From assembly GCF_001194135.2 (NCBI RefSeq), contig NC_068987.1, forward strand, positions 24,043,913 through 24,107,912: DNA of 64,000 nucleotides. The letters are read 5' to 3'. A program made the position numbers and the translations under genes. Source of the stretch: Octopus bimaculoides. Taxonomy: Eukaryota. Below, piece after piece: positions 6,276 to 63,234 of this stretch; the first letter of the stretch is position 1; every line of letters starts with the position of its first letter. The notes below the pieces were generated by a model. The model was not told the origin of the DNA, made no database searches, and saw only the letters and a list, made by a program, of their open reading frames with translations.

Positions 6276-7514
6276 TCATGTCTTGTCTTTCATGTGATTT
6301 TGTCTATGACTACTCAAACTACAATTCTTAGGGAATGTTTCTCCACATATATCACAATGATATGATTTTTCACCTGTGTGAACACGTCGATGTCGAGTTA
6401 AATGTTGATTATCAGAGAAGGTTTTACCACAAATATCACAATAATATGGTTTTTCACCTGTGTGAACACGTACATGTAGTGTCAAATGACTGCTCTGGGA
6501 GAACGTTTTGCCACAGATATCACAGTGGTATGGTTTTTCACCTGTGTGAACACGTACATGTAGTGTCAGGTGACTACTTTGAGTGAATGTTTTACCACAG
6601 ATATCACAGTGGTATGGTTTTTCACCAGTGTGAATGCGCTTATGTTTAGATAATTTACTACTGTCAGAAAATGTTTTCCCACAGATATCACAGTGGAATG
6701 GTTTCTCTCCTGTGTGAATTCGTTTATGACTTGTCAGAGTACCATTCTCAGAGAAGGTTTTCCCACAAATATCACAGTGGTATGGTTTCTCTCCTGTGTG
6801 AATTCGTTTATGAGTAGTCAGAGTACCATTTTCAGAAAATGCTTTCCCACAGACATCACAATGGTATGGTTTTTCACCAGTGTGAACATATTTATGACTA
6901 CTCAAATAAGAATTTCGGGAGAATGTTTTTGCGCAAATACCACACTGATATGGTTTCTCTCCTGTGTGAATACGTTTATGAATAGTTAAACTATTACTAT
7001 GGGAGAATGTTTTGCTGCAAATATCACAGTGATATGGTTTCTCACCTGAGTGAATATATTTGTGTCTGGTCAAATGACCATACTGAGTGAATGTTTTGCC
7101 ACAAATATCACAGTGATATGGCTTTTCACCAGTATGAATACGTCTATGATTAGTTAAAGTACTACTTTCAGAGAAATTTCTACCACAGATATCACAATGA
7201 TGTGGTCTCTCACCTGTGTGACTGTATCTATGACTAGTTAAATAATACTTTCGAGAGAATGTTTTATTACAAATATCACAATGAAATGGTTTCTCACCAG
7301 TGTGAATATATTTGTGAACAGTTAAACTACTATTATAAGAAAATGATTTACCACAGATATTACAGTGGTATGGTTTCTCAGCAGAATGAACAGCTTGGTG
7401 TCGTGTTAAATGACTATATTTAAAGAATGTTTTACCACAGGTTACACATTGATAAATTTTCTCATCTATGTGAATATATTTATGAATAGGTAAAGAATTG
7501 CTTTTAGCAATCAT
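6276..7514 (-). CDS. C2H2 zinc-finger protein ZNF1, 14 tandem fingers, 412 aa
   Basis: 14 CX2CX12HX3H fingers with TGEKP linkers in one uninterrupted ORF. The start is a downstream ATG; the ancestral leader upstream is broken. Confidence 0.93.
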   Translation of the reverse strand: MIAKSNSLPIHKYIHIDEKIYQCVTCGKTFFKYSHLTRHQAVHSAEKPYHCNICGKSFSYNSSLTVHKYIHTGEKPFHCDICNKTFSRKYYLTSHRYSHTGERPHHCDICGRNFSESSTLTNHRRIHTGEKPYHCDICGKTFTQYGHLTRHKYIHSGEKPYHCDICSKTFSHSNSLTIHKRIHTGEKPYQCGICAKTFSRNSYLSSHKYVHTGEKPYHCDVCGKAFSENGTLTTHKRIHTGEKPYHCDICGKTFSENGTLTSHKRIHTGEKPFHCDICGKTFSDSSKLSKHKRIHTGEKPYHCDICGKTFTQSSHLTLHVRVHTGEKPYHCDICGKTFSQSSHLTLHVRVHTGEKPYYCDICGKTFSDNQHLTRHRRVHTGEKSYHCDICGETFPKNCSLSSHRQNHMKDKT

Positions 7515-7713
7515 TTTACCATAAGTCTCACAATGTTTAAGATTTTGAGCTTGTATGAATTAACTTTTGTTTAAGTATATTATTAGACTGTGTGAATACC
7601 TTCCTACAGGCATTGGAGTGTTGAGATTTTTTTTGTATTTACACATGAGATACAACACTAGATTCAGACTGCATTTGATAGTGAACCTTTCTTTCACACA
7701 ATTTCTCCTCCAT
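7515..7713 (-). pseudogene. Disrupted ancestral N-terminal leader of ZNF1 (MEEKLCE..., now a 24-codon uORF)
   Basis: ATG at 7713 reads MEEKLCERKVHYQMQSESSVVSHV then TAA (7639-7641). The frame continues IQKKSQHSNACRKVFTQSNNILKQKLIHTSSK, then a +1 frameshift precedes LKHCETYGKMIAK. It aligns with the N-termini of ZNF2, 4 and 5. Confidence 0.85.
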
Positions 7714-8156
7714 AAGTTTCCTCCTTCTTTTATAGTAAATATTTCCTTTTTGTAAATTTAGTTAAATTTCAGATGTCTCATGAAGAAGAATATATATATT
7801 ATATGAAACTTTCAATAAATACTGAAGATTACAATATATATACTCTAGGTGTAAAAAGTGATGTTTCACAAAGTCTGTAGATGTCTTGGTCATAAAGAAG
7901 CAGTTTCAAGATACTTTATTAGGACAATTTTTTTTTTCTTTTTCCTTCAATCTTGGAATTAAAAACAAGCAAGTAAACTGACTCTAGCTTTGAAGAGACA
8001 CTCAGATATGAAAGACATTACATGTAAACCAAGACAGATATGTTATCAAGTTTATGCTGCAATCCCTTTATAACTATAATTTAAATTTCACAGAAACCTA
8101 ATCAAGGTTATAAAGAACAGTTAATTGGGTTCCTTGATAATGTCTGTCTTCAATTT

Positions 8157-8237
8157 TCAAAATCTGACGTATTTCTTGATATATTTTGAATCAGCAATTA
8201 CCATTTCAATATCACCACAAACTCTGAAATAAAGAAC
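8157..8237 (-). promoter_or_regulatory. Putative splice acceptor (ttctttatttcag) and 15-codon uORF at the start of the ZNF1 terminal exon
   Basis: Polypyrimidine tract plus AG at 8225-8224; uORF MVIADSKYIKKYVRF* at 8204-8157. A homologous acceptor precedes all eight genes. Confidence 0.65.
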
Positions 8238-8628
8238 ATAAACTAGAAAGGATACTGAAAAGTGAACATGAAGGCTATTAAGCAGGGGAGACTTCAACAG
8301 AGACATGAGATGACAGAATAATAATAAAAAGGCTCAGAAAACATCTACATAAGAAAGAGACAATAGAATGGATATGTAGCATAAATGGATGATGTGGTGT
8401 GTGGATGGGGACATTAGAAATGAGTTAATAATAAGCTACATACAGATGTCAAAAGAATAGCATAATTAAGGATCATAAACATATAACAATATAAGGCTGG
8501 GAAGCTTAGACAAGAATAAGGTCATTGAAATTCCAGTTATAATTACTTCTGATAACAGATCTTTAGTAACAGCTTGATATCAATGTTGAGGTATCAGTAT
8601 ATATGTATAGATGTGTGTGTGTGTGTGT

Positions 8629-11519: not shown

Positions 11520-11929
11520 TAATGACAAGAATGGCAACAATACTAATTTTTCTGGTAGTGCCCCTCTTGGTATGAGAAGCACCTGTGGTAGTGACGAGGA
11601 ACACCGGGATAGAAAATGTGAAAGAAATCGTAGGAATACTCGATCTATATGTGGATAAAGACCGGGAAATATGAAGATGTTAGCATAATAAAACCAAAAA
11701 CGATGGCTTGCCTAATTATATATTATGTTAACAAGTCTGGGCAGAGATAAGAGACGAGAAACTACAAACAACGTAGGGAACAAACAATGGTTTTAATTGC
11801 TTTGGGATTATTACCAATACTGATGTCTTTCGATAAAGTGACGATAATTAAGTACAATAACACGATAAACCAAAATATATACACAGATATCTCGTCAAAA
11901 TTGAAACTGCTTTAACTGGGAAAACATTG

Positions 11930-12309
11930 TGACAATACGTTACAATTAATGACAAATACTTCAATGTCATTATTAGTAAATAGTTTCTTAAACTGAGCGT
12001 CACCAATGCTTATTTTTAAATAGAAATTAAGCCTGCATGTAAATAACATCTCAGAATTAATACATACTGAGGGTGGTTCAAAGATGTTTGCACTAAAACA
12101 TATTCAATAATTAGCTACTGATAATAGATTAACTTATTGTTTTCTTTGTGTCTTACCTCATTCTTTGATGCCACAGTATTGATAGGTGAAATAAATATAT
12201 AGGTATTAACAGACATAATACACTTCTTAGATATTCTTTTAGCTTAATTCACTTGTTTCACAGAAAACCGTGATCAATCTATCGAATAATAAGCCATACT
12301 TTCGTAAAA
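11930..12309 (-). promoter_or_regulatory. Conserved upstream non-coding module, copy 1 (ZNF1 unit)
   Basis: attaagcctgcatgtaaataac...ttattgttttc...GCCATACTTTCGTAAAA (12293-12309). Homologous blocks occur in the other minus-strand units. Confidence 0.65.
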
Positions 12310-12329
12310 ATAATTCTGCATAACTACAG

Positions 12330-13115
12330 ATTTCGGTTTTCGGATACAGAGATTCCGGAAAATTGCCAAAAATCAGAAGTTTGAAATTTCTATTGAACTA
12401 AAATTTTTTTGGTGAAATACGTAGAAAAATACGGAGATTATGATTCTGAAAAAAAAAAATTTTGTAAAATTTCAATTTTTCAAAAATAAATACCCCCACA
12501 TCATATCCCGGAATCATTGGAATTTGTTTTTTTGCATTGAATGAATTCCGGTGATCTACTATGCTACAAAACCCTTTTTTTTAGGCTCGGAAAACGGGGT
12601 GAGGTGGGGTGGAAGCCTCGGAAACTTCACCCCCACCCCCATTTTCAAATATTTTTTGCTATTTCTTTCTTTTCCCATAATTCTAGATAACATTTTGCAG
12701 AAATACGTTTTCGAGAGAGTGTGGATTACATTAGATTGAAAATTCAAAGAAGTTTGAAATGAATATATGAAAATGCAGAGGTTATAGAAGTTAGAGTGTG
12801 TACAGTTTTTGCATGTATGTGTGAAACGAAGTATAATATTAAGGCACTTTTTTGCCAATATTAAAACAAAAATATCTCCTGCCCATCTTGGCATAACTAC
12901 AGGGTTTTACCCCTAGTTATGCCAATATCTTTTTCTTACCTCTTAAAATCACTGGATATAATAATCCCAGATTGTAAAATAAATTTCCAATTTTTGGCGC
13001 CGAAATGAGTTTCATTTTTGTGTGGAGAGAGAGAGAGAATGAGTGCAATAAAGAGAGAGAGAGACAGAAAGAAAAAGAGAGTGAGTGGGTGATGAGGTTT
13101 ACCCAAACATTTGAC
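12330..13115. repeat. Interspersed repeat, probably a non-autonomous DNA element; same family as 31180-32720
   Basis: Long near-identical stretches are shared with 31320-32000 and 32220-32310, e.g. cattttcaaatattttttgctatttctttc...gagagagtgtggattacattagattgaaaattcaaagaagtttgaaatgaata and tttttggcgccgaaat. Confidence 0.75.
12878..12930. repeat. 53-bp hairpin insertion with 7-bp flanking duplication
   Basis: Perfect 12-bp arms TTGGCATAACTA (12888-12899) and TAGTTATGCCAA (12914-12925). AATATCT is duplicated at 12871-12877 and 12924-12930. The insert is absent from the family copies near 31940 and 32545. Confidence 0.75.
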
Positions 13116-14825: not shown

Positions 14826-15269
14826 ATTGTCCTTCTGCGACAAAATTTCTTCATGAGCATCAACACAGAGCACAAAATCAGTACAAAAATCTTTGCTGAC
14901 GCTCCATGTTTTGGATTTTGTGTCAAATTCTGATGTTTGTTGTCATTGATAGAGTGATTCTTTTCAAGAGCTCTTTCTCAAAAGATACCTCCCTTGGTTT
15001 TGGTGATGCATTCTGCTGTTCACAAAACAAAGTCATTTCTGATGTTACACCAGAGTCATTTTCAGAATGACCTAAATGGTAAGGTAGACAGCTGAAAAGA
15101 GAATTTATATGATCAAATTGGATCTTGAATCAATGTATAGCATCTGCCATTAGAATCATGACTGGCATCAAGCATATGTGATTGCATAGCATGGTCAGCT
15201 TCTGTGGATTCAGTTAAGTTTTATTTATATATATATATATAAGTTTGTGTCTCCTTGCCATTAACATAG

Positions 15270-15470
15270 CATATTTGTAAATGAGTGTCAGTCAGTGTCA
15301 TTCATTTTCCCTATTCAGCAAAAAACTTATATGGCCATGGAAAAATATTTGCTTAGAAACAAGTGAGGGTTGGTGACAGGAAGGGTATCTGGCCATCATA
15401 AGATCTGCCTCAACAAACTCATGCAAACATACACAAGTGCACATTAAAAATGATAATGATGATCTATAAT
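15270..15470 (+). mobile_element. RTE-like SINE tail, headless
   Basis: ttgtaaatgagtgtc...agaaacaagtgagggttggtgacaggaaggg...ttaaaaatgataatgatgat. Confidence 0.6.
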
Positions 15471-16176
15471 AGTTTAAATGCAGTAATCTGCAAGGGAACT
15501 CTTTTCAATTAAGACCTGACTTTTACAGTAAATCACCCTTCTTCCAGCTACACAAACTTACTATACTGGAAATAACTGATAAAAGATATACTTTGTAGAT
15601 TATTGCAACTTCAATTTAAAATCACAAAAGTAATTCCATAACGAAACACAGCTATCATCAGCTCATAACATTTTAATAGCGACAAATGTCTGTAAGCAGA
15701 TAAAATATTAAAATTTAATTATAAAATACATCAATTTTATTTGTTATTTAAATAAATGGTCCGTCCCATTTACACATGTAAATCTATATACACTTATTTA
15801 ATCATGCTGAAGAATGTTCTGGAAATTCTCCAGATTGTGTTGGAGAGAGTAAAAAAAGAAATTGTAGTTTGTAAACATTGCAAATCAGAAAGATTATTTT
15901 TTTATTAATCAGTGTATGAAAAATTTTATTGAAAATTTTCTTAACTATGTAAAATATTTGGGTGATATACAAAACAAATTGTTTTAGAAAGTTAACAGTT
16001 AATAAAAATTACAACACACTGATTTATAACCTTTTGCAAATGTTACAAAATATTCTCAAATAATTCAAGTAACATTATATAAACATGGCATTCATTAATT
16101 TTCTGTGATGTTCTTTAAACATTCACGGTATTAATTCCATTATGTCATAAAGTAATAATTTTACAAATTCTTTTAA

Positions 16177-17439
16177 TTATTTCCCTTGTTTTACAGTTTG
16201 GTTTTCATGTGCTTTTTGTTTGTGATTAGTCAAAATTTTATTCTTAGAGAAAGTCCTACCACAGATGTTGCAGCGATATGGTTGCACACCAGTGTGAACA
16301 GGTCTGTGGCGAGTTAAATGCTGATTATCAGAGAATGTTTTACCACAAATATCACAACTGTATGGTCTCTCACCTGTGTGACCACGTATATGAATCTTTA
16401 AATGTGTATTCTGAGAGAATGTTTTACCACAGATATCACAGTGGTATGGTTTCTCACCAGTGTGAACCCGTACATGTTGAGTTAAATGAACATTCTGAGA
16501 GAATGTTTTTCCACAGGTTTTACAGTGGTATGGTCTTTCACCTGTGTGGATGCGTATATGATTAGTTAACCTACTACTACGCGTGAATGTTTTCCCACAA
16601 ATATCACAGCGGTATGGTCTAATTCCTATGTGAGCTTGTTTGTGACTAGCCAAAGTATAATATGCAGAGAAGGCTTTCCCACAGATATCACAATGGTATG
16701 GTTTCTCACCAGTGTGAGTACGTCTGTGAACAGTCATGTTACCTCTTCCAGAGAATGTTTTCCCACAGACATCACAACAGTGTGGCTTTTCACTGGTGTG
16801 AATGTATTTGTGAACATTTAAATTAGAACTTCGGGCGAATGTTTTACTACATATACCACACTGATATGGTTTCTCACCTGTATGAATACGTATGTGACGA
16901 GTTAAGCTGTCAGTCTGAGAGAATGTTTTCCCACAGATATCACAGTGAAATGGTTTCTCACCTGAGTGAATATATTTGTGTCTACTCAAATGATTTAGCT
17001 GAGTGAAACTTCTCCCACAAATATCACAGTGATATGGTTTTTCACCAGTATGAATACGTCTATGATTAGTCAAAGTACTGCGGACAGAAAAGGTTTTGTC
17101 ACAGATATCACAGTGGTGTGGTTTCTTGCTTCTGTGAGTCAGTTTGTGTCTAGTCAAATATGAATTCTGAAGGAATACTTTACCACAAATTAAGCATTCA
17201 AAATCTTTCTGATCTGACTGAACACCCTTTGAGAATAAACGAGTTTTTGCAATTGCTTTGCTGTAAATTTTTTTAACCTTAAAGCTTGTAAGCAGTACAT
17301 TGGACTGTGTGAATGTTTTCTTATGAATGTCAAAGGGACATGATTGCTTTTCTACATCTACATATACCAGATTAGATATGTCATTGGATTCAGGCTGTGT
17401 TTGATCGTAAACCTGGTTTTCACAAAGCTTTTCTTCCAT
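16177..17439 (-). CDS. C2H2 zinc-finger protein ZNF2, ~78-aa leader plus 12 fingers, 420 aa
   Basis: Intact ORF starting [18 protein letters not shown] with 12 canonical fingers and TGE[KR]P linkers. Confidence 0.95.
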
Positions 17440-17863
17440 AATTTTCTTCTTTCTTCAATAATATACTTTTAAAAAAAAGTAGATTAATTTATAATGTTCA
17501 ATGAAGGTAAGCAAATTCTATGAAACTTCTTAAATACTAAAGTTAGAATGAATTTTCTTTTACAATAAAAGTTGAGATTTCACAAAGTCTGAAGATATCT
17601 CCTTCATAAGGAAATAATTACAAGATATTTTATTAGGACAGTTTCATTTCCTAGAGTTCAATATTGCAAACAAAAATCAGCAGGTAAGCAGACTCCAGTT
17701 CTCAAGATCCACACTGATATGAAAAGATATTACAGATAAACCAAACTGAATCTTCATGTTCTGTCTCTGTTACAATCTATTGTGTTCTTGATAATGATAA
17801 TCTTCTGTTTTCAAAATCAAATTTCTTGATATCAGCAATTACTATTTCAGTATCTACACAAAT

Positions 17864-17878
17864 CCTGAAGTGAAGAAT
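17864..17878 (-). promoter_or_regulatory. Putative splice acceptor of the ZNF2 terminal exon
   Basis: tattcttcacttcag with AG at 17866-17865, homologous to the other units. Confidence 0.6.
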
Positions 17879-18589
17879 ATAATGATATAATGTAGTACGG
17901 ACGTTATCTACAGAGGACAGACACATATAGTGGAAACAAATGAAAATTTTGAAAGGAAAAAAAATACAGGGATAATAGATTTAGACGAGCAGAATATTTT
18001 TTATTAGTGTTAAAATATAGAAAGTTTAGAGTAATAGTATGTATACACAGATTGATTTAAATGTCTTTATATCCACCTATCCATGCTAACAGAACCACCT
18101 CTGCTTACTACAAGAGAGCCTATGTGTGATTAATGAATGCGAGAAATAGTAGCCAAATATTCCTGGAATTACAACCTGTCTTGAAAATGAAATGTAGCTT
18201 GAGAAAAAGCTATGTCCAAAAGTAGGGTGGCGTGTTATAGAAACCTAGTTCAAACTCGCTCACTTTCATGTTGTTTCAATGTCTTGTTTAAATAAAGTAG
18301 AAACAAATTCTTTGTTAAAGGAATGTTCTGTTTTCAGAATGTCTCTAGATAGGATTTCTAATATGGCACTTTTCCTGTCGTATCATAGAATAGTTAATAC
18401 ATGTTAACACAAAAGCTATTAAAGGTAGTTATCTTTTTCGTTCGTACGACCTGGTTTGGTTTGAATTTTCAACATTAATGTAGTTTTACCTGCTAGTTAT
18501 GAAAATCACATTGGTTTTTTTTTTTTTTACATTATTTAAAAATGAAAATGTTACAACCCTTTAAAATTCGAAATTTTTGTTAGTTTTAG

Positions 18590-18847
18590 CCAATAGAGAT
18601 TAAACATAAATGTAAATAACATCTCACCATTAATACATATCACGGATTGTTACAACAAAGATATTTGCACGAGAAATACTAAAATACCCTGTTTAGCAAT
18701 TAGCTATTGACAATAGATCAACTTACTGTTTTCCTTCCGTATTTTCATATTATTTGATGCAATAATATTTAGAAATGAAGTGAAATCCAACATTTTGTTC
18801 CTTAATAAAGAGCTGATGAATGTATCATTAGCCGCTTTTTCGTAAAA
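18590..18847 (-). promoter_or_regulatory. Conserved upstream non-coding module, copy 2 (ZNF2 unit)
   Basis: gagattaaacataaatgtaaataacatctc...ttactgttttcc...GCCGCTTTTTCGTAAAA (18831-18847). Confidence 0.65.
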
Positions 18848-18882
18848 ATATTTTACAGGGCAATGAAATGGCAGAATTGTTC

Positions 18883-19694
18883 NNNNNNNNNNNNNNNNNN
18901 NNNNNNNNNNNNNNNNNNNNNNNNNNNNNNNNNNNNNNNNNNNNNNNNNNNNNNNNNNNNNNNNNNNNNNNNNNNNNNNNNNNNNNNNNNNNNNNNNNNN
19001 NNNNNNNNNNNNNNNNNNNNNNNNNNNNNNNNNNNNNNNNNNNNNNNNNNNNNNNNNNNNNNNNNNNNNNNNNNNNNNNNNNNNNNNNNNNNNNNNNNNN
19101 NNNNNNNNNNNNNNNNNNNNNNNNNNNNNNNNNNNNNNNNNNNNNNNNNNNNNNNNNNNNNNNNNNNNNNNNNNNNNNNNNNNNNNNNNNNNNNNNNNNN
19201 NNNNNNNNNNNNNNNNNNNNNNNNNNNNNNNNNNNNNNNNNNNNNNNNNNNNNNNNNNNNNNNNNNNNNNNNNNNNNNNNNNNNNNNNNNNNNNNNNNNN
19301 NNNNNNNNNNNNNNNNNNNNNNNNNNNNNNNNNNNNNNNNNNNNNNNNNNNNNNNNNNNNNNNNNNNNNNNNNNNNNNNNNNNNNNNNNNNNNNNNNNNN
19401 NNNNNNNNNNNNNNNNNNNNNNNNNNNNNNNNNNNNNNNNNNNNNNNNNNNNNNNNNNNNNNNNNNNNNNNNNNNNNNNNNNNNNNNNNNNNNNNNNNNN
19501 NNNNNNNNNNNNNNNNNNNNNNNNNNNNNNNNNNNNNNNNNNNNNNNNNNNNNNNNNNNNNNNNNNNNNNNNNNNNNNNNNNNNNNNNNNNNNNNNNNNN
19601 NNNNNNNNNNNNNNNNNNNNNNNNNNNNNNNNNNNNNNNNNNNNNNNNNNNNNNNNNNNNNNNNNNNNNNNNNNNNNNNNNNNNNNNNNNNNNN
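18883..19694. other. Assembly gap (N run)
   Basis: Run of N. Confidence 1.
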
Positions 19695-20140
19695 CTATTA
19701 CACTAAGTGACGAGAAATTACATAAGCCTAACTATCAACAGACTGTATTTTCGGGTATTTATTATCTTTTTTAGTTTCTTTCCCTAAACATTTGTAACTA
19801 ATTTTTTTCTTTATATTTTGCCGATTCCACAAGTTTCTTTCTTACACGCACGCACGCACACACACACAGATAAGCATACCAAAATTACTTGGGTTTAAAT
19901 CAGGATAATCTTCAAACTGTAGGTGCTTGTGTAAAGAACTTTCCATTATGTGCATTTTTTTGTTTCTTTTAATATATTTCTGAACTTCAAACAGCGAGTT
20001 AGAACATGCTTGGGGAAATCCGTAAACTTCTATTAATCGTATAATATATCCTGAATCTCGAGAATTAGTTATTTTTAATCAAATCCTTGTGACTTGAGAG
20101 TGTTAATACAACATAGGTACGCCATACAGCCACTTTACTG

Positions 20141-20462
20141 GCACTCTGCGGATTACGACGACGAGTGTTCCGGTTGATCCAATCAATGGAATAACCTGCT
20201 TGTGAAATGAATGTGCAAGTAGCTGAGTACTCCCCAGACACGCGTACCCTTAACGTAGTTCTCAGGGAGACTCAGCGTGACACAAAATGTAACAAGGCTG
20301 GCCGTTTGAAGCACAGGAACAACTCATTTTTTTTGCCAGCTGAGTGGACTGGAGCAACGTGAAATAAAGCGTCTTGCTCAAGGACACAACTTGTCGCCAT
20401 AAATCGAATTCGTAATCTTACGATCGTGAGCCGAATACACTAACCACTAAGCCATGCGCCTT
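20141..20462 (-). mobile_element. tRNA-derived SINE, near full length
   Basis: A-box TGGCTTAGTGG and B-box-like GAATTCGATTT, central gttgtgtccttgagcaagacgctttatttcacgttgctccagtccactcagctgg. The 3' half is shared with 22634-23008. Confidence 0.85.
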
Positions 20463-21007
20463 CACTACACATCCACTGGACACCTGGGAAAGACACATAG
20501 TGCTAGGCTTACACTCACCTGTGACATGAGTATGTTCATTAGTTTGTGTTTGAATCATACATGGCAGGGTTAGGACTCCTTGCCAAATTCAACATTTTTA
20601 GTTTTACCTTCTTAGAATTAGAGTACATAATCTATTATATGAACATTCCGAGACATTTCATAGCCAAACGGCACAAATTTGCTAATGGGACAGGACACCG
20701 GGACATATAGTATCTCTCTCTCCCGCTACGAAAGCAAATTTCTCATTTGTAAATTTGCAACAAATATGTTATGTTTCTAAATATTATCAATACTGTTGCA
20801 ATCTACTCCATTGAAGGCCTATCTTTACAAAATTTCATTAAAAAAATGTCTATTTTTCAGAAAGTTATTGCCTGACACCAAGCCTCGTATATGCCCTCAT
20901 TATGCACCACTATGTTAACTCCCTCTCTTTATACAATGTAAAGCATGATTAGAGAAATCAATCAACCAACAATTATTTGGCTGTTATATAGAGATTTTGT
21001 CTATTTT

Positions 21008-21023
21008 TTAATTTTTATTTCAG
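21008..21023 (+). promoter_or_regulatory. Putative splice acceptor of the ZNF3 terminal exon
   Basis: ttaatttttatttcag with AG at 21022-21023. The following sequence (attttctgttgacattgaga) resembles the exon starts of the minus-strand genes. Confidence 0.6.
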
Positions 21024-21279
21024 ATTTTCTGTTGACATTGAGAGAACATCAACCAATGTATGAAATTTTAAAGACTGCAGAATTACATTATCATCAAGAA
21101 AGCTTGTGACAGTTTATCTAACTATGATTAAATTTCATTAATAATTGTGGTGTTGATTGGAAATATATTGGTTAGATGGTGATGGTCATATTGGAGAAAA
21201 TTTGACATTACACCAGAACTATATTTTTGTTGTGTCTGATATCTGCTTCTTCTTTGAAATATTGGCAAAAGAGTAAATT

Positions 21280-22392
21280 ATGGATGGGAAACTGTGTAGG
21301 AGTGAGGTTCATGGTGAAAAACACCCTGATAATCTTTGTGTATCTAATCAAACAATGTACATTGAAAAGAAATCAAATCTCAGTAGTAACAACGGTAAAA
21401 TATTTGCACAAAGAACTAATACCTCAAAACATAAGATACTCAACACTAGCTCACTCCGTTACCAATGTGAAATTTGTGGTAAACGATTCCTAATAAAAAA
21501 CTTTTTGTCTTTACATAAATGTATTCACACTTCAGATAAACTCTATCACTGTGACACCTGTGATAAAACATTCTCTGAGAGAAGTCAGTTAATTTGTCAT
21601 ATATGTTTCCACATTGGTGATGGATTATACAACTGTAATATTTGTGGTAAAACATTCCTTGCGAGAGGCAAATTAAATCGTCACAAACGGATTCACACGG
21701 GTGAGAAACCATATTACTGTGATATCTGTGGCAAAACATTCTGTGGGAATAGTAATTTGACTAGTCATAAATGTGTTCATACAGGGAAGAAAGCGTACCA
21801 CTGTGATATTTGTGGTAAGTCATTCTCTCACAATAGTGCTTTGACTTGTCATAAACGTATTCACACAGGGGAGAAACCCTATCACTGTGATATCTGTGGT
21901 AAAACATTCTCACATACTAGTGGTGTAACATGTCATAAACGTATTCACACTGGTGAAAAACCATACCACTGTGATATTTGTAATAAAACATTCTCCCACA
22001 ACAGCGGCTTAACGTGTCACAAACGTATACACTCAGGTGAGAAACCATACCATTGTGATATCTGTGGGAAAAATTTCTTTCAAAGTGGTAAATTAACAAT
22101 CCATAAACGTCTTCACACAGGTGAGAAACCCTATCACTGTGAAACCTGTGGTAAAACATTCTCACGACATGATAGCTTAAACATTCACCAACGTTTCCAT
22201 ACAGGTGAAAAACCATATCACTGTGATATCTGTGGGAAAGCATTCTCTCAGAATACTCATTTGACTAGTCACAAACGTATTCATACTGGTGAAAAGCCAT
22301 ACTGCTGTGATATTTGTGGTAAAACATTCTCTCATAGTGGAATTTTATCAAATCATAAACACATTCACACTAGACATAAAGCATGGCACTAA
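21280..22392 (+). CDS. C2H2 zinc-finger protein ZNF3, leader plus 11 fingers, 370 aa, inverted relative to the cluster
   Basis: Intact ORF starting MDGKLCRSEV with 11 fingers. A decayed 12th finger follows the TAA. Confidence 0.94.
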   Translation: MDGKLCRSEVHGEKHPDNLCVSNQTMYIEKKSNLSSNNGKIFAQRTNTSKHKILNTSSLRYQCEICGKRFLIKNFLSLHKCIHTSDKLYHCDTCDKTFSERSQLICHICFHIGDGLYNCNICGKTFLARGKLNRHKRIHTGEKPYYCDICGKTFCGNSNLTSHKCVHTGKKAYHCDICGKSFSHNSALTCHKRIHTGEKPYHCDICGKTFSHTSGVTCHKRIHTGEKPYHCDICNKTFSHNSGLTCHKRIHSGEKPYHCDICGKNFFQSGKLTIHKRLHTGEKPYHCETCGKTFSRHDSLNIHQRFHTGEKPYHCDICGKAFSQNTHLTSHKRIHTGEKPYCCDICGKTFSHSGILSNHKHIHTRHKAWH

Positions 22393-22633
22393 AATATAAC
22401 CTATGGTAAACATTGCCTCAGAATAGTAATTTAGCAAAGACCTGAACGGAAGATGAATCATAAAAGTTTGAACCAAAGAGAGAGCCTCTATGCAACAAAA
22501 TTTCTTTTAAATCATACACTATTGTCTTTAGAAAAGATACATTGAATGCTGTAATCTGAAATGAACTATGTCTATAAGCAATAAACTTGTTTCACTTATT
22601 CAAACAATGTCCTTAAATATTATATTTGTCAGG

Positions 22634-23008
22634 AGTGGAGGCGCAATGGCCCAGTGGTTAGGGCAGCGGACATAGGATCGCGGTTTCGATTCCCAGACCG
22701 GGCATTGTGAGTGTTTATTGAGCAAAAACACCTAAAACTCCACGAGGCTCCGGCAGGGGATGGTGGCAAACCCTGCTGTACTCTTTCTCTCACTCTTACT
22801 TCCTGTTTCCGTTGTGCCTGTAATTCAAAGGGTCAGCTTTGTCACACTGTGTCACGCTGAATATCCCTGAGAACTACGTTAAAGGTACACGTGTCTGTGG
22901 AGTGCTCAGCCACTTGCACGTTAATTTCACGAGCAGGCTGTTCTGTTGATCGGATCAACTGGAACCCTCGACAACGTAAGCGACGGAGTGCCAACAACAA
23001 CAACAACA
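22634..23008 (+). mobile_element. Full-length tRNA-derived SINE with (CAA)n tail and 10-bp target-site duplication
   Basis: A-box TGGCCCAGTGG, B-box GGTTTCGATTCC, tail (CAA)n. ATTTGTCAGG is repeated at 22624-22633 and 23009-23018. Confidence 0.92.
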
Positions 23009-26000: not shown

Positions 26001-26099
26001 ATTCAGCCCCCATGTGAGAGGTAGTATCAAATATAAAGGTACATAAACTTTTTGTTTGTGAGAATATAGAAGACTGGTGTTGGAAAAATCTGGTTACCA

Positions 26100-44545: not shown

Positions 44546-44662
44546 AATGCATTTAGTCAACCAGTGCTTTTTAATCACATAACCAAGTTAACAGAAAAAT
44601 TTTATTTTACTTTACTTCCCATTTTGCATTGCAAATGCAGCCCATCCTCTGTGTGTGTGTGT

Positions 44663-44739
44663 GTGTGTGCATGCTTGCATTTATGTGTGTGCATGCTTGC
44701 ATTTATGTGTGTGCATGCTTGCATTTATTTGTGTGCATG
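44663..44739. repeat. 22-bp minisatellite (gtgtgtgcatgcttgcatttat) x3 plus a partial unit
   Basis: Units start at 44663, 44685 and 44707. Confidence 0.9.
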
Positions 44740-46355: not shown

Positions 46356-46516
46356 AGTATCTCTTTTGGGGAATGTTTTTCCACAGACATCACAGGAGTA
46401 TAATCTATAATCTTTTTATAAACTTGGTTTCAATTTCACAGGAACTTAACCAATGTTATAAAAACAGTTAATCAAATGATTAAAAAACAGTTCTTCTGCG
46501 TCTTCTGTCTTTAAAA

Positions 46517-46591
46517 TCAGACAAATTTCTTGATATCTCTTGAATCAGCAATTCCCATCTCAATGTTAACACAGACTCTGAAGTAAAGAAC
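46517..46591 (-). promoter_or_regulatory. Putative splice acceptor and 13-codon uORF of ZNF6
   Basis: ttctttacttcag with AG at 46579-46578; uORF MGIADSRDIKKFV* at 46558-46517. Confidence 0.62.
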
Positions 46592-48699: not shown

Positions 48700-49084
48700 A
48701 TCACAGATAGTTAACAAATACTGGAATGTCACCATGCATAATGTTAGCTAAATAGTTTCTAAAACTGAATATTGCTAATGTTTACATTTAAACAGATTAA
48801 ACCTGAACGTAAATCGCATCACACGATCAAAACATCATATTGTGGATTGTTACAAGAGACGTTTTCATTAGAAATAATTAGCTACTGAAAACACACCAAC
48901 TTACTGTTTTTTAATCTTTTTCTCATTATTTGGTGTTATAATATTGAGAGATAATTTGATCTATGGATCTATAGACACAATATACTTACTATCTGTCCAA
49001 TAAACCATCTTTACAGATTCACAGAACCCAAGTGATATACTTCCATGCAGACTTAATCAAATCTTCAGCCGTACTTTCGTAAAA
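48700..49084 (-). promoter_or_regulatory. Conserved upstream non-coding module, copy 5 (ZNF6 unit)
   Basis: cagattaaacctgaacgtaaatc...caacttactgttttt...aaatcttcaGCCGTACTTTCGTAAAA (49068-49084). Confidence 0.65.
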
Positions 49085-50045: not shown

Positions 50046-50047
50046 TG

Positions 50048-53215: not shown

Positions 53216-53944
53216 TCAGATTAATTCTTTTATTGCTTGCTGTCCATGTGCCTTTTTTTTATGATTAGTCAAACTCCTACTCTCAGAGTAAGTTTTACCA
53301 CAAATATCACAATGATATGGTTTTACACCTGTGTGAACAGGTTTGTGACGATTTAAATTCTGATTGTCAGCATATGATTTACCACAAATATCACAAGTGT
53401 ATGGTCTTTCACCTGTGTGACCACGTACATGGAGTGTTAAATGACCTTTCTGAGAGAAGGATTTACCACAGGTATCACAGTGAAATGGATTTTCACCTGT
53501 GTGAATACGTACATGTTGAATTAAATGACCATTCTGAGTGAATGTTTTATCACATATATCACAGTGATATGGTTTCTCACCAGTGTGTATGCGTACATGT
53601 TGAGTTAGATGAGTATTCACCGAGAAGGTTTTACCACAGATTTCACAGTGGTATGGATTGTCACCTGTGTGCATGCGTATGTGTCTAGATAAATTACTCT
53701 TGCCAGAGAATCTTTTTCCACAAATATCACAGTGGTATGGTTTCTCACCAGTGTGCATGCGGATGTGCTGAGTTAATCTATTACTGACACAGAATCTTTT
53801 ACCACAGATATCACAGTGGTATGGGTTATCACCAGTGTGTATGCGTATGTGTCTAGTTAATGCACTACTGCCAGAGAATGTTTTCCCACAGATATCACAA
53901 GAGTATGGATTCTCACTACCCTGAGCACCTCTGTGATTAGTCAT
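53216..53944 (-). CDS. C2H2 zinc-finger protein ZNF7, leaderless, 8 fingers, 242 aa
   Basis: The ORF starts at the helix Met of a decayed finger (CYFNTCRKTFF*RGN-MTNHRGAQ). Confidence 0.9.
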   Translation of the reverse strand: MTNHRGAQGSENPYSCDICGKTFSGSSALTRHIRIHTGDNPYHCDICGKRFCVSNRLTQHIRMHTGEKPYHCDICGKRFSGKSNLSRHIRMHTGDNPYHCEICGKTFSVNTHLTQHVRIHTGEKPYHCDICDKTFTQNGHLIQHVRIHTGENPFHCDTCGKSFSQKGHLTLHVRGHTGERPYTCDICGKSYADNQNLNRHKPVHTGVKPYHCDICGKTYSESRSLTNHKKKAHGQQAIKELI

Positions 53945-54540
53945 GTTACCTCTTCAAAAGAATGTTTTCCTACAAGTATTAAAATAGCATGGCTTTTCAC
54001 TTGTGTAAATAGGATTGTGTCTATTTAATGGATATTCTAAAATATGCTTACCACAAATACCATTTTCATAGCCAAACATTAATTTATCAAATGCAGCAAA
54101 TATTTTTCCACAGATATTGCATTGATATGGTTTCTCACATAAATGAATATATTTGTGTGTAGTCAAATGACTTTGCTGAGAGGACACTCTTCCACAAATA
54201 TCAAAACAGTATAACTTTTCACCAGTATAGATACATTTATGCTTGGTCAAATTACTGATGTAGGATAAAGTTTTACAAGAGATTATGCCCTGATAAAATT
54301 TCTTATCTTTCTGGACATCATTATGCAAGAACAAAATTTGTTTTTGATAATTACTTAACTATTCATTTTAAAACATTTAAGCTTTTTAACTTGTATGAAA
54401 AACCAAAAAAACTTTCTTTAATAAAGGATTAAACTATATAAATGTTTTTTTACTGGTATACAAAAGACAAAATTTGTATCTGTGTAGCAACTAGATTCTG
54501 ATTTAGCTCGATCATGTTACATATCTCTATCACAATGTGC
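53945..54540 (-). pseudogene. Decayed 5' part of ZNF7 (old leader and fingers 1-5)
   Basis: ORF 54334-53954 (TTG start) aligns with [14 protein letters not shown]...[12 protein letters not shown] of ZNF4/5 but has lost many Cys residues. It is in frame with ZNF7, separated by one TGA at 53956-53954. Confidence 0.85.
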
Positions 54541-54633
54541 TTATAATCTTAATTCAAACATTAATGCAACTTCCTCAAGATGTTATAGATGTGTTACTTG
54601 TAATCTATTCTTCATAATACCAGTTTTCTTTCT

Positions 54634-54714
54634 TCAAAATCTGGTAAAGTTCCTTAAATATACTGAATTCCACAATACCATCTCATTGTCACCACAAAAC
54701 CTGAAATAAAAAAT
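54634..54714 (-). promoter_or_regulatory. Putative splice acceptor and 15-codon uORF of ZNF7
   Basis: ttttttatttcag with AG at 54702-54701; uORF MVLWNSVYLRNFTRF* at 54681-54634. Confidence 0.62.
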
Positions 54715-55002
54715 ATAAGGTAAAAAGGACAATGTAAATGACAGTTATTAGAGAAATAGGGCTTGACTAGATTGAATGAGAGAATAAAAGGGGAAGAGCA
54801 GAAAAACAATATTAAGGATATCCATACATAACATCAGTTATGATGTGATGTATGGACAAGAACTTTTGAAAGGAAATAATGAGACACACAGATGTAGAAA
54901 GAAATCAAGAATTCTTTTTGTGGGAGTATACACATATAAATAACAAACAGTGTTGTCATCCACATAGAAGGTTGAAAAAAAAAGCAATGAAAATTTAACA
55001 CA

Positions 55003-55235
55003 GTGCCCCTAGACTGGCTCCTGTGCAGGTGGCACGTAAAATACACCATTTTGAGCGTGGCCTTTGCCAGTACCGCCTGACTGGCCTTCGTGCCGGTGGT
55101 ACGTAAAAGCACCCAGCTGTAGAAACTCTGCCAAATCAGATTGGAGCCTGGTGTAGCCATCTGGTTCACCAGTCCTCAGTCAAATCGTCCAACCCATGCT
55201 AGCATGGAAAGCGGACGTTAAACGATGATGATGAT
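55003..55235 (+). mobile_element. RTE-related 3' repeat with (GAT)n tail, young copy with an internal deletion
   Basis: Near-identical to the reverse complement of 28762-29002 but missing ~39 bp between cacc and cagctgtagaaa. Confidence 0.8.
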
Positions 55236-55505: not shown

Positions 55506-56088
55506 NNNNNNNNNNNNNNNNNNNNNNNNNNNNNNNNNNNNNNNNNNNNNNNNNNNNNNNNNNNNNNNNNNNNNNNNNNNNNNNNNNNNNNNNNNNNNNN
55601 NNNNNNNNNNNNNNNNNNNNNNNNNNNNNNNNNNNNNNNNNNNNNNNNNNNNNNNNNNNNNNNNNNNNNNNNNNNNNNNNNNNNNNNNNNNNNNNNNNNN
55701 NNNNNNNNNNNNNNNNNNNNNNNNNNNNNNNNNNNNNNNNNNNNNNNNNNNNNNNNNNNNNNNNNNNNNNNNNNNNNNNNNNNNNNNNNNNNNNNNNNNN
55801 NNNNNNNNNNNNNNNNNNNNNNNNNNNNNNNNNNNNNNNNNNNNNNNNNNNNNNNNNNNNNNNNNNNNNNNNNNNNNNNNNNNNNNNNNNNNNNNNNNNN
55901 NNNNNNNNNNNNNNNNNNNNNNNNNNNNNNNNNNNNNNNNNNNNNNNNNNNNNNNNNNNNNNNNNNNNNNNNNNNNNNNNNNNNNNNNNNNNNNNNNNNN
56001 NNNNNNNNNNNNNNNNNNNNNNNNNNNNNNNNNNNNNNNNNNNNNNNNNNNNNNNNNNNNNNNNNNNNNNNNNNNNNNNNNNNNNNNN
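55506..56088. other. Assembly gap (N run)
   Basis: Run of N. Confidence 1.
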
Positions 56089-56519: not shown

Positions 56520-57124
56520 TTATTAATTATGACAATCTGTCACAAATGATACTTGAAAGTTGCCATGCTTAATGTTTGGCACATAGTTTCTGAAACTGAA
56601 TGCTGTTAGTATTTAAATTCAATCGAGATTAAGCCTGAATGTAAATAACACCTGACTACCAATAGATCATAATATGGATTATTACAACAGAGAAGTTTCT
56701 TGTACTAGAAATATTAAAATAATTAACAACTGACAAAGCATCAACTTAATGTTTTCTCTGTATTTGGTGAGATAATCAGATATATGGAGATATGTAGAGA
56801 TATAATATACTCACTATATGTCTAGTCAAGCAATTCCACTGATTTCACAGAACCTTAGCAATAAACTTTAATGCAAACCTAGTTCATCAAATCTTCAGCC
56901 GTATTTTCGTAAAAAAAAAGACTTATTTTCTTTTTTCTCATTATGTTGTGCCGTAACACCGAGTGATGGTCTGATCTGTGAGTGTATGCTTATATATATA
57001 TATATTTAGAGAGATAGAGATACTCAGTTTATGTGCAGTCAACCAACTTTATTTTCACAGAATCTACGCGGCATACTTTAATGCCAACTTAATTCATCAA
57101 ATCATCAGCCGCGCTTTCGTAAAA
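56520..57124 (-). promoter_or_regulatory. Conserved upstream non-coding module, copy 6 (ZNF7 unit), with its last ~130 bp duplicated
   Basis: gagattaagcctgaatgtaaataacacc... with the motif at 56898-56914 and again at 57108-57124. Confidence 0.65.
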
Positions 57125-60505: not shown

Positions 60506-60959
60506 TCCTGCTTTGGCATGGTTTCTATGTCAACCATTTTACAGTGTACAGGGTGCTTATTATGTGGCACCGGCACTGGTACTTTTTATGTAGTACCAAC
60601 ACCAGTAGAGGCACCAAGTAACTTGCAAGATGAATACTTATTAGCAGGGAGAGGGAGTGAAAGGTTAGAGAATAATAGGACAAAGATAAGAGTCTTACCA
60701 TGAAGAAGAGATAGAGAGAAAGATAGAGACAGTCAGATTGAGAGAGGGGGAGGGGAATAGATGGTGTTGAAGATACATTGGGATCTGCCTGTAAGTATAA
60801 GCAGTACAAAGGGGACAGAAAGGCATGCTCCATTAGAGTGTGAAGGGAGCAGCATGGAAGACGGATTTTAAATGATGATGTGCTGGAGCAAAATTTGACA
60901 GCTTGCATGAAAGGAAAAGAAAACAATATTCTGTCAAAAAAAATAAAAGTACTTTAAAA

Positions 60960-61719
60960 AATAACAACTAGATAATGGTTGGAAGGTGACAGTTTACTCA
61001 AAGTAGCCATCCTCAGTTTCTATCACAGCAGCCACAAGATGGCTCTGGAACCTGGTGTACGTATTGCTCAGTGTCTCTGGGAAGATCTTTAAATACCTCC
61101 TTGATCTTAGCCACCAGTTCAGCTGTGGTATTGTAGGCAGAGCAGTTGGTGTCTTTCTCGACCATACCCCACACAAAGTATTCCATGGGATTACAATTAG
61201 AGAATTAGGAGGCGAGAAGTTGGGGCTGATAAAGTCATAGAAATTCTCTGACAACCACTTTTGACTCTTTCTGAAGGTATAACAAAGAGCTGAATCCTGC
61301 TGCCACACACATGGCCTTCCAGCAGCTTCACATAGCCATCTGAAATGAGCCTAAAGCCCTGATCAAATATGTGGGTATGAATTCCAGTGTGTAGATGCAA
61401 TTAGAACGTCTGCTGTGTCCCTTCTTGCTGGCCATGGCTTTGTAGCCTCTGTTGCAGCTGTCCAGGTCTTACAACTTTTACAGAGCACTGAGCAGCAGTT
61501 ATGATGCTGGCATTTTGATACCTGGTGCAAATCATTATGATACATGTAACTCTTTTTCAATATTCAGATGGCTTCCAATCTCCCATGTCAGCTAACTTTT
61601 TCTTAACAACTTTAATGTTAATGCTTTCCAGTGCTGTTGATTGTTTACAAATTCATCAAGCTGTTCCTGAAAAAAAAAAGGTGACATAAAAAAATCATCA
61701 AATTTAGCTAAGCACCCTG
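60960..61719 (-). mobile_element. Tc1/mariner-superfamily transposon remnant, internally deleted
   Basis: WQQDSALCYTFRKSQKWLSENFYDFISPNFSPPNS followed by a frameshifted CNPMEYFVWG, and HIFDQGFRLISDGYVKLLE. The left end begins cagggtgcttagctaaatttg. Confidence 0.8.
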
Positions 61720-62343
61720 TGTATGTGTGTGTGCTTTTACTAACGAAGGCTTGCCTCTCTTTTAATAGTTTTTGACATTTTGAATGCCATACTGTACAAA
61801 ATAACTAGTTTTATTTAAGGTAAAGCATTTATATCAAATCATCCTACTTCCAAATACTTCTAATAGAAAGAAACGGTGTAATAGTTTTTATAGATTATTG
61901 CAACTTTACTTGAAAGACAGAAAAATATATCAATCACAAAATAGAACAGTTCATAGCATTAAAATTATGACAAATGTCTGTGTAAACAGAGTGGATATTA
62001 AAGTTAATAATTTAAAAATATATATTTTTGATCTTTAATAATCTCATAGAGAGGTCTATACGTTTATGTAAATTTCCTTTTATAAAACATTAAACTGTTT
62101 CATATTTACAATGTTTTAGCCAAATTAGGTCAAAATGACATGTAAGTCTATATTCCGTTCCATTGCCATGTTGAACATTCTGGAAAGAAGTTTTTAAAAA
62201 GTATGTAGTTTATGTTTGTTAGAGACAAACATTGTTATGAAAACATAGTTCTTATCCACTTTCTGTAATGTTCCCCAAAAATTTCATTGTATTATGCCTC
62301 ATAGAAATTTGCTTGTGAATTTATGAAGTTTTTCAAAATGATT

Positions 62344-63234
62344 CTATTCTTTTACTGTTACTTGTCCATGGGCCTTTTTTTTATGATGTCTCAAACTCCT
62401 ATTCTCAGAGTAAGTTTTACCACAAATATCACAATGATATGGTTTTACACCAGTGTGTACAGGTTTGTGACGGTTTAAATTCTGATTGTCAGCATATGAT
62501 TTGCCACAAATATCACAAGTGTATGGTCTTTCACCTGTGTGACCACGTATATGAAGTGTTAAATGACCTCTCTGAGAGAAGGATTTACCACAGGTATCAC
62601 AGTGAAATGGATTCTCACCTGTGTGAATACGTACATGTTGAGTTAAATGACCATTCTGAGAGAATGTTTTCCCACAGATATCACAGTGGTATGGCTTCTC
62701 ACCAGTGTGTATGCGTACATGTTGAGTTAAATGACTATTGTCAGAAAACGTTTTACCACAGATTTCACAGTAGTATGGGTTGTCACCAGTGTGCACACGT
62801 ATATGCTTAGTTAATGAACTATTGCCAGAGAATGTTTTACCACAAATATCACAATGGTATGGCTTTTCTCCAGTGTGTACACGTATGTGTTGAGTTAAAC
62901 CACTTCTGTCAGAGAAACTCTTTCCACAAATATCACAGTTGTATGGTTTTTCTCCAGTGTGCATGCGTATGTGTCTAGTTAATCTATTACTGTCACAAAA
63001 TTTTTTTCCACAGATATCACAGTGGTGTGGATTATCACCAGTGTGCATGCGTACATGTCTTGTCAATGCACTGTTACCAGAAAATGTTTTTCCACAGGTA
63101 TCACAAGGGAATGACTTCTGTCTTATGTGAACCTGTTTGTGTTGAGTCAGACTATTACAGACAGAGAATGTTTTCCCACATATATCACAGTGATATGGTT
63201 TCTCACCTGTGTGAGTACGTTTGTGATTAGTCAT
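62344..63234 (-). CDS. C2H2 zinc-finger protein ZNF8, leaderless, 10 fingers, 296 aa
   Basis: The ORF starts [13 protein letters not shown] at the helix Met of a decayed finger (...EIFSEGGK-MTN). Confidence 0.91.
   Translation of the reverse strand: MTNHKRTHTGEKPYHCDICGKTFSVCNSLTQHKQVHIRQKSFPCDTCGKTFSGNSALTRHVRMHTGDNPHHCDICGKKFCDSNRLTRHIRMHTGEKPYNCDICGKSFSDRSGLTQHIRVHTGEKPYHCDICGKTFSGNSSLTKHIRVHTGDNPYYCEICGKTFSDNSHLTQHVRIHTGEKPYHCDICGKTFSQNGHLTQHVRIHTGENPFHCDTCGKSFSQRGHLTLHIRGHTGERPYTCDICGKSYADNQNLNRHKPVHTGVKPYHCDICGKTYSENRSLRHHKKKAHGQVTVKE

Follow-up and report, generated by a model that had tools for sequence, protein, structure and literature searches.

Collinear finger arrays and a conserved finger K in a tandem cluster of KRAB-less C2H2 zinc-finger genes of Octopus bimaculoides

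The sequence considered here is a 64-kb window of the Octopus bimaculoides genome (contig NC_068987.1, positions 24,043,913 to 24,107,912 of the forward strand), with a G+C content of 34.5 % and four runs of N; unless otherwise indicated, coordinates are those of this window. It harbours eight stop-to-stop open reading frames (ORFs) that encode arrays of C2H2 zinc fingers, seven on the minus strand (g1, g2 and g4 to g8), spaced roughly 9-10 kb apart, and one on the plus strand (g3). All eight consist of tandem C-x2-C-x12-H-x3-4-H units with a period of 28 residues, which identifies them as Krueppel-type poly-zinc-finger sequences, and their 89 intact fingers lie without exception on an exact 84-nt lattice. 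The remaining long 'ORFs' of the window are translated N runs. An earlier reading of this sequence (the original prediction) had described an eight-gene C2H2 cluster in which a constant C-terminal module is joined to a variable finger array; the cluster itself is borne out by the eight ORFs and their 84-nt period, whilst the nature of the module and of the variable region is the subject of what follows.

Three of the minus-strand genes are intact. The largest, g2 (ORF 16177-17454, gene 16177-17439), encodes 420 aa comprising a leader, two dead fingers and twelve further fingers, which serve as the reference for naming the finger columns A to L in all other genes. Both g4 (ORF 26657-27826, gene 26657-27808; 383 aa) and g5 (ORF 35416-36537, gene 35416-36519; 367 aa) contain ten fingers, corresponding to columns B-K. 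In each of these three genes an in-frame stop is found 5-6 codons 5′ of the ATG, and the complete coding region, leader and dead fingers included, forms a single uninterrupted ORF. The only plus-strand gene, g3 (ORF 21277-22392, gene 21280-22392), is likewise uninterrupted and encodes 370 aa with 11 fingers; its leader is related to that of the family, although it belongs to a more distant subfamily that lacks the D[NK]Q finger described below.

The other four minus-strand genes are eroded at their 5′ ends. In g1 (ORF 6276-7559) there are 14 fingers, consisting of three extra N-terminal fingers followed by columns B-L with a divergent finger L, and a decayed leader (MEEKLCERKV...; 7543-7713, minus strand) carries one in-frame stop and one frameshift ahead of the finger ORF. 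The g6 ORF (45144-46415) also has 14 fingers, in the order H H H I F G H H I H I J K L; it begins within a degenerate F finger, and both the leader and fingers B-E have been lost by deletion. Eight fingers (H H H I I J K L) are retained in g7 (53216-53953), with decayed fingers B-F at 53954-54420 that have lost their zinc ligands and a stop directly before the retained ORF, whilst g8 (62344-63282) retains ten (G H H H H I I J K L) and is preceded by a decayed leader and fingers (63283-63750) interrupted by stops and frameshifts. A (TA)n-rich microsatellite occupies 63284-63333 within this decayed part of g8. The ORFs of g6, g7 and g8 share a start methionine, which is derived from the helix of finger F (RGNMT). 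The N runs at 18883-19694, 31447-31602 and 55506-56088, which are those within the region 6276-63234, are all intergenic and at least 1.4 kb from intact finger ORFs, so that no reading frame crosses a gap; the decayed 5′ fingers of g7 are separated from the gap at 55506 by about 1.1 kb.

With regard to domain content, the window proteins match the Pfam zinc-finger families PF00096 at 118-209 bits and PF13465 at 208-292 bits (cut-offs of 25 and 40, respectively), and their fingers are joined by TGEKP-like linkers. Searches of g2, g3 and g5 against Pfam returned zinc-finger families only, with no match to KRAB (PF01352), SCAN, BTB or ZAD, and the N-terminal 81-91 aa matched no Pfam family. A profile built from this N-terminal region and compared with 1.8 billion representative sequences recovered mostly fingers from the middle of arrays, which indicates that the apparent N-terminal domain is in fact two degenerate fingers; by eye, the region consists of an acidic leader of about 35 aa followed by two fingers without zinc ligands. 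Protein searches using the I-L module, full-length g5, or g2 lacking D-H are dominated by vertebrate and insect poly-zinc-finger proteins, whose long arrays outscore the true relatives, and exact look-ups of the eight window ORFs and of a 394-aa O. vulgaris product found no match in the protein collection. On this evidence, the products of the seven minus-strand genes are probably poly-zinc-finger proteins of Krueppel type in which no effector domain can be recognised.

All seven minus-strand genes carry the finger with a D[NK]QxLxR helix that the original prediction had singled out, each quoted helix being present, and in every case this finger (column K) is preceded by a finger with a QxxHLx[L/I] helix (J) and, before it, one with QxxHLxx (I). 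The I-J-K helices read QSSHLTL / QSSHLTL / DNQHLTR in g1 (6378-6608), QNVHLTQ / QNTHLKI / DNQHLTR in g2 (16294-16524), QNAHLTQ / QSSHLTL / DKQSLTR in g4 (26717-26947), QNGHLTQ / QRGHLKL / DNQSLTR in g5 (35428-35658), QHGHLIQ / QKGHLTL / DNQNLNR in g6 (45240-45470), QNGHLIQ / QKGHLTL / DNQNLNR in g7 (53333-53563) and QNGHLTQ / QRGHLTL / DNQNLNR in g8 (62455-62685), all on the minus strand. The RGH-TGERP ending ascribed to six of the seven genes is found in exactly that number, the exception being g1 with RVH-TGEKP. The D[NK]Q finger is terminal only in g4 and g5; the other five minus-strand genes add finger L after it.

Within finger K, the residues D(-1), Q(+2) and R(+6) are shared without exception by the nine known members of the family, two of which come from O. 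vulgaris (Ov1 and Ov2). Position +3, by contrast, differs from clade to clade, with H in g1 and g2, S in g4, g5 and Ov2, N in g6-g8 and G in Ov1. Neither the D[NK]QxLxR helix nor the looser D(-1)/Q(+2)/R(+6) combination occurs in any of 2828 fingers from 393 unrelated zinc-finger proteins retrieved from the database, and the match is therefore not due to chance, making the K helix a real family signature. The tail displays further oddities, namely a Tyr in place of the conserved Phe in finger K of g4-g8, a Pro between the His pair (HxPVH), a TGV(K/Q)P linker after K and H-x4-H spacing in L. Finger K is the most robust feature, and its frozen D/Q/R contacts are the one notable detail of the cluster.

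Gene-body and flank homology recurs every 9-10 kb or so along the window, with the intergenic DNA decayed to patchy identities of 66-82 %. In g1, g2, g4 and g5, diagonal unit-by-unit identity matrices and unit-level alignments reveal ten collinear fingers, B-K, at 71-93 % nucleotide identity, and at the level of whole fingers the tail is no more alike than the head. The best match of every finger in the other genes, including a paralogue from O. vulgaris, is the finger of the same column. From these patterns, the seven minus-strand genes are likely to be old tandem duplicates, in units of about 9-10 kb, of a single founder. This gene would have comprised the acidic leader of about 35 aa followed by two degenerate and 11-12 intact fingers (columns A-L), and the family has presumably evolved since by birth and death. 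The 'constant module' would then be the positionally orthologous fingers I, J and K, plus L where it survives, inherited from that founder.

Three kinds of event account for the differences in finger number: g1 and g6-g8 are eroded at the 5′ end, g6-g8 have duplicated H- and I-type fingers, and g4 and g5 have lost L. The extra fingers of g6-g8 are all of H or I type and stem from tandem duplication directly ahead of J in that lineage, as unequal crossing-over on the 84-nt lattice would predict. Near-duplicate pairs are also seen in g1, between F and G and between I and J, with I and J of this gene sharing 90 % of their nucleotides. Finger L was destroyed in g4 by a frameshift and a deletion, whilst in g5 a stop codon directly follows finger K. 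A further source of array variation is the near-neutral turnover of contact residues in the central fingers of the collinear arrays, above all D, F, G and H. The reported range of 8-14 fingers per ORF is thus numerically correct, but the counts derive in part from 5′-truncated or decayed genes, and much of this variation in number is 5′ decay and internal duplication rather than a designed variable region. Similarly, the contrast between a constant tail and a variable array was drawn too sharply, given that B-K are collinear at 71-93 % identity and that the whole-finger ratio of non-synonymous to synonymous divergence (dN/dS) is 0.18-0.50 in every column.

Relatives of the cluster are present in two further octopus genomes. 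An O. sinensis protein (P0017) that is the orthologue of g3 led to a gap-free locus, L002 (CM016865.1:30,060,468-30,083,197), which is collinear with window positions 15230-32112 at 89-95 % nucleotide identity and contains orthologues of g2, g3 and g4. It spans the gaps at 18883-19694 and 31447-31602 with order and orientation unchanged, and together with the Pfam matches to zinc fingers alone it substantiates the placement of these genes in a KRAB-less, clustered octopus C2H2 family. These are the three window genes whose O. sinensis orthologues the analysis covered. The orthologues of g2 and g4 are 420 and 383 aa long, as in the window, with coding DNA 97 % identical; this equality of length, along with the same out-of-frame tail in g4, shows that these features predate the species split and are not assembly errors. 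Between the two species the proportion of synonymous differences (pS) is about 0.06, and the ratio of non-synonymous to synonymous proportions (pN/pS) is about 0.3 in fingers. The g3 orthologue (L002:10001-12730) is annotated as a spliced product of 180 aa and its long ORF starts only inside the first finger, in contrast to the uninterrupted 370-aa ORF of the window, a discrepancy that may reflect either a lesion in one species or a wrong O. sinensis model.

A second locus, L001 (O. vulgaris OX597820.1:36.92 Mb), was found through P0244, the one true relative to emerge from the N-terminal profile search, and contains two more family members with K and L that are at most 80 % identical to the window genes. 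As O. vulgaris is very close to O. sinensis, an identity this low makes L001 paralogous to the window, and the subfamily accordingly extends beyond it. The intact copy (405 aa; L001:8370-9584) has the finger order C D E F G H I J J′ K L, with the K helix DKQGLSR, whilst the broken copy ends in I (QNGHLTQ), K (DNQSLTR) and L.

An element of about 110 nt is found 0.5-0.75 kb upstream of the minus-strand ORFs. Each of the seven genes has a conserved copy, as does the O. vulgaris paralogue, the positions being 8112-8358 (g1), 17779-17990 (g2), 28142-28352 (g4), 36890-37051 (g5), 46500-46582 (g6), 54535-54805 (g7), 63807-63999 (g8) and L001:7645-7881; in g6 it lies only about 0.1 kb from the ORF because of the deletion in that gene. 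The element opens with a pyrimidine tract and an invariant, splice-acceptor-like TTTCAG|G followed by GTTTGTGGTGACATTGAGATGGTAATTGC..., suggesting that this site is the start of the finger exon and that it is preceded by one or more other exons.

Rates of change were estimated from Nei-Gojobori counts pooled over a core set of g1, g2, g4 and g5, with helix positions -1, +2, +3 and +6 taken as contact sites. Synonymous divergence (dS) is 0.59 in the terminal fingers I-K vs 0.56 in the middle fingers B-H, and for individual fingers it reaches 0.66 in I and 0.80 in K. At contact sites, dN/dS is 0.32 in I-K vs 0.86 in B-H, whereas the framework values are 0.21 and 0.18, respectively. Across all gene pairs, the 5′-eroded g6-g8 included, pairwise dN/dS (omega) is 0.22-0.45, and the 3′ flanks of g6-g8 are 76-80 % identical, matching their coding dS of 0.26-0.36. 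The original prediction had reasoned that equally conserved synonymous sites would point to conversion and that identical dN/dS at helix positions in terminal and middle fingers would speak against constraint; instead, dS is normal in the terminal fingers and the contact ratios differ. Wholesale gene conversion is ruled out by the equal dS in I-K and B-H, by flank divergence that matches coding dS and by the presence of short tracts only. What maintains the module is purifying selection on the protein rather than conversion on this scale.

Positive selection at contact sites was also considered and rejected, with contact dN/dS at 0.86-1.00 in B-H and 0.79 in the duplicated H-type fingers, and omega never greater than 1. 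Contact values close to 1 are compatible with relaxed constraint or with a mixture.

How strongly the contact residues of the triad differ from those elsewhere depends upon the measure employed. Of eight contiguous triplets, I-J-K has the lowest mean pairwise contact difference (0.29 vs 0.50-0.72), it ranks second of 120 amongst all three-finger sets, and only eight of a minimum of 46 contact changes fall within it (binomial p = 0.039). The I-J-K contact residues thereby appear to change about half as fast as others, a modest and statistically weak effect (p 0.02-0.1) that is mostly carried by K. A series of observations weighs against giving the triad as a whole a special status. When tree events are set against third-position changes, the ratio is 0.16 vs 0.33 (odds ratio 2.0, p = 0.10), and addition of the O. 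vulgaris paralogue lowers the triad to rank 7 of 84. Contact divergence with that paralogue included rises in the order K (0.20), C (0.38), E (0.42), J (0.45), I (0.60), F (0.72), D (0.75), H (0.82) and G (0.88), and the contact positions of C and E show roughly the same degree of conservation as those of I and J. Only K departs in its contact-to-framework ratio (p = 0.0036 with linkers and 0.049 without, neither corrected for ten fingers). The intact O. vulgaris paralogue carries another helix, HKNSLTL, in finger I, and its J-K pair has undergone duplication and partial deletion, the first copy having been fused by deletion (…HIRGH|KAYADYQSLTYHTPV|RHC…); even a 'constant' module can therefore be duplicated and broken. 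Third-position identity is, moreover, raised in columns C and J, and conversion-like tracts are detected between g6 and g7 in K (p = 0.0005), g5 and g8 in I (p = 0.006) and g1 and g4 in J (p = 0.02; all from a Sawyer-type runs test and uncorrected). Taken with the likeness of I and J in g1, these signs imply that the constancy of I and J may partly be due to conversion.

Several other explanations for the constant tail have to be set against selection on a dedicated module. The simplest of these, which is a genuine if lesser possibility, is that there is no special anchor, and that the cluster displays the ordinary heterogeneity of fingers in a tandem zinc-finger family, with a tail that is constant by orthologous descent; unequal crossing-over alters the interior of arrays and spares their ends, and the original comparison was itself anchored at the C-terminus. 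It accords with the collinearity of the arrays in g1, g2, g4 and g5, the similar whole-finger dN/dS of all columns, the conservation of C and E to the level of I and J, the event-based p value of 0.10 and a gain of fingers that is interior and confined to H and I types, as well as with the general rule that finger number and contact residues turn over amongst paralogues in poly-zinc-finger expansions (PMC2604467). It fits less well with contacts in I-K that change around half as often at equal dS amongst paralogues, and with the orthologues, where five contact replacements have occurred in A-H and none in I-K (2.1 expected, P ~0.12). Nor does it readily account for the retention of D/Q/R in K in nine of nine members whilst the framework of K changes as much or more, or for g6-g8, which have lost their 5′ halves and yet keep I-L open at an omega of about 0.23. 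Concerted evolution, in which recurrent conversion between neighbours homogenises the 3′ array ends, could explain the raised third-position identity of J (and C) in most pairs, a dS for J of only 0.076 amongst g6-g8 vs about 0.25 in the 3′ flank, the tracts listed above and the 90 % identity of I and J in g1. It is nonetheless very improbable, as pooled dS is equal in I-K and B-H and is undiminished in I and K individually, the tracts are short (~15-60 nt) and pair-specific, and K, despite having the most constant helix, shows normal synonymous divergence and a clade-specific +3 residue that tracks the gene tree.

The conserved tail (K with L) might alternatively be a protein-protein or RNA interface rather than a DNA-reading unit. 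The atypical features of the tail (Tyr in K, HxPVH, TGV(K/Q)P and the H-x4-H of L) would suit such a role, as would the lack of any effector domain elsewhere in the protein according to Pfam. Against this, K and L align without gaps to canonical DNA-bound fingers, the invariant residues of K are the canonical base contacts -1, +2 and +6 with +3 alone varying, as for a change of middle base, and L has been lost in g4 and g5, the g4 loss being found in O. sinensis as well, all of which render an interface improbable. A different objection is that g1, g6, g7 and g8 are dead pseudogenes whose arrays are uninformative with regard to function. The leader of g1 has a stop and a frameshift, the leader and B-E are gone from g6, decayed fingers and stops lie upstream of the g7 and g8 ORFs, and none of the four retains the family's normal start codon. 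Their retained ORFs, however, run for 246-428 codons without a stop (246-424 in g6-g8), g6-g8 show a pairwise omega of 0.22-0.25 over a dS of 0.26-0.36, a level in keeping with that of their neutral flanks and 4-6 times that separating the window from O. sinensis, and all three begin at the one shared methionine from the finger F helix, so that wholly dead genes seem quite unlikely. Immediately upstream of these open, constrained ORFs the DNA has accumulated stops, frameshifts and ligand losses, which argues that the 3′ finger blocks of g6-g8 stayed under selection after their 5′ halves had been released from it.

The most likely reading is a family of DNA-binding proteins with an inherited tail under purifying selection, and what the tail might do can be framed in terms of the fold. 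The I-L module aligns gap-free with DNA-bound fingers of ZFP568, Aart, PRDM9 and CTCF (E-values of 1e-42 to 1e-110), and the proteins would be expected to bind DNA as canonical finger arrays. As D(-1), Q(+2) and R(+6) are invariant, finger K would read the same outer bases in every paralogue, whilst the middle base would differ by clade with H, S, N or G at +3. Part of a subsite would in this way be common to the paralogues, recognised mainly by K and less so by J and I, with the rest of the site differing between them. The original prediction had inferred a shared anchor, be it a common half-site or a protein/RNA interface, joined to a variable region; judged from the sequences compared here, this is a plausible hypothesis with weak statistical backing, and not a finding. 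A bolder version, for which the odds appear poor, would have I-J-K act as a family-wide docking unit that places every paralogue on a shared core of about 9 bp, by the canonical recognition code roughly 5′-G(N)C-nGA-AGA, with position +3 of K and the duplicated H/I-type and central fingers re-tuning the neighbouring bases. It could be directed at a single repeat family or at the genes' own conserved upstream element, of which the g6 and g8 copies contain GACAGAAGA. A crude recognition-code motif for K-J-I, GNCNGAAGA, occurs 11 times vs 4.3 +/- 1.9 in shuffled sequences, and its sites include 46501-46509 and 63900-63908, these being the GACAGAAGA copies in the upstream elements of g6 and g8; however, the excess is a lead only, as several hits fall in paralogous repeats and are non-independent, and the motif was chosen after the fact. 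Were it true, this would represent a modular design of anchor plus tuner in an effector-less invertebrate zinc-finger family.

Expansions of C2H2 genes are a headline feature of cephalopod genomes, and passages in three sources establish that clustered, KRAB-less expansions exist in octopus genomes (PMC12513265, PMC9795677, PMC10547256, citing Albertin et al. 2015), one of them also reporting enriched nervous and embryonic expression for octopod C2H2 expansions generally (PMC12513265). The genes of the window are likewise many-finger Krueppel-type sequences, tandemly clustered and without KRAB, and clustered copies occur in O. sinensis and O. vulgaris. The passages on octopod C2H2 genes in these sources give no finger-by-finger anatomy of a cluster and do not name the D[NK]QxLxR subfamily, and a search of PMC12513265 for 'C-terminal' and 'gene conversion' gave no occurrence of either. 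Amongst tandem poly-zinc-finger paralogues, variation in finger number, fast contact change and short conversion tracts are the rule (Emerson & Thomas 2009, PMC2604467). Mammalian clusters of KRAB zinc-finger proteins resemble the present one in that finger number differs, contacts evolve fast relative to a conserved scaffold, tracts are short, and 28-aa units are joined by TGEKP linkers. Unlike them, the window genes lack KRAB or any other Pfam effector, their contact dN/dS is only about 0.8-1.0, and a single ORF encodes the leader and the two dead fingers together with the array.

Finger minisatellites of the PRDM9 type are built on an 84-nt lattice and gain or lose internal fingers by unequal exchange, with ends that are more stable than the interior. 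The window shares with them (structures 5v3g and 5egb were matched) the lattice, the internal gain and loss and the stabler end fingers, but it consists of diverged paralogous genes (dS 0.3-0.7) rather than alleles of one hypervariable gene, has no PR/SET or KRAB-like domain, and contains finger copies that are far less similar (65-90 % at the nucleotide level). With regard to the ZFP568, Aart and CTCF arrays (PDB 5wjq, 5v3m, 2i13 and 7w1m), the gap-free alignment of I-L is a likeness generic to the fold, and as none of these has a D-x-Q-x-x-x-R helix they offer no direct reading of the K subsite. The locus is a well-resolved but ordinary lineage-specific family that reveals no new mechanism and illustrates birth and death, finger duplication and contact turnover. 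If the account given here holds up, the three intact and four 5′-eroded genes, along with the O. sinensis and O. vulgaris loci, make a tractable set for binding assays, and with one finger (K) frozen at its contact residues and its neighbours variable, these could throw light on the ways in which effector-less arrays come to recognise different targets.

A number of minor features accompany the genes. A pair of 185-nt inverted repeats with 81.6 % identity (20139-20323 and 22811-22993) flanks g3, the sole plus-strand gene; these could be the mark of an inversion, or a dispersed repeat present in two copies of opposite orientation. Scans of the 64-kb window for tRNA genes and Rfam families gave no hits. 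In O. sinensis, the counterparts of the gaps at 18883-19694 (3.3 kb) and 31447-31602 (0.58 kb) contain no finger or linker motif. The first of these, an 812-N gap (region 18803-19696), corresponds to 3.3 kb at L002:3553-6867, so that either its length has been underestimated or O. sinensis carries an insertion. The second is given as an estimated 156 N vs about 0.58 kb in O. sinensis; its flanks are 85 % identical to one another (31382-31440 vs 31603-31661) and both (31325-31661) map onto overlapping parts of 12493-12794, which places the gap within a local direct repeat.

Dispersed repeats of two kinds are scattered through the cluster. One, resembling a short interspersed nuclear element and some 200-230 nt in length, is found at 28763-28995, 32860-33091, 42348-42506, 55043-55235 and 32001-32135, and in O. 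vulgaris at L001:1026-1245 and 7881-8021; its copies are 70-87 % identical and occur in both orientations, with short stretches of 94-95 % identity in the O. vulgaris locus. The other is present once per duplication unit between genes (11921-12225, 18580-18769, 30676-30769, 40754-41008, 48744-48987 and 56618-56765) and also at L001:5640-5996 and 20013-20322, with one copy adjoining the gap at 18883. Finally, a 22-nt tandem repeat (3.5 copies, 98 % identity) is situated at 44662-44739, about 400 nt downstream of the g6 stop codon.

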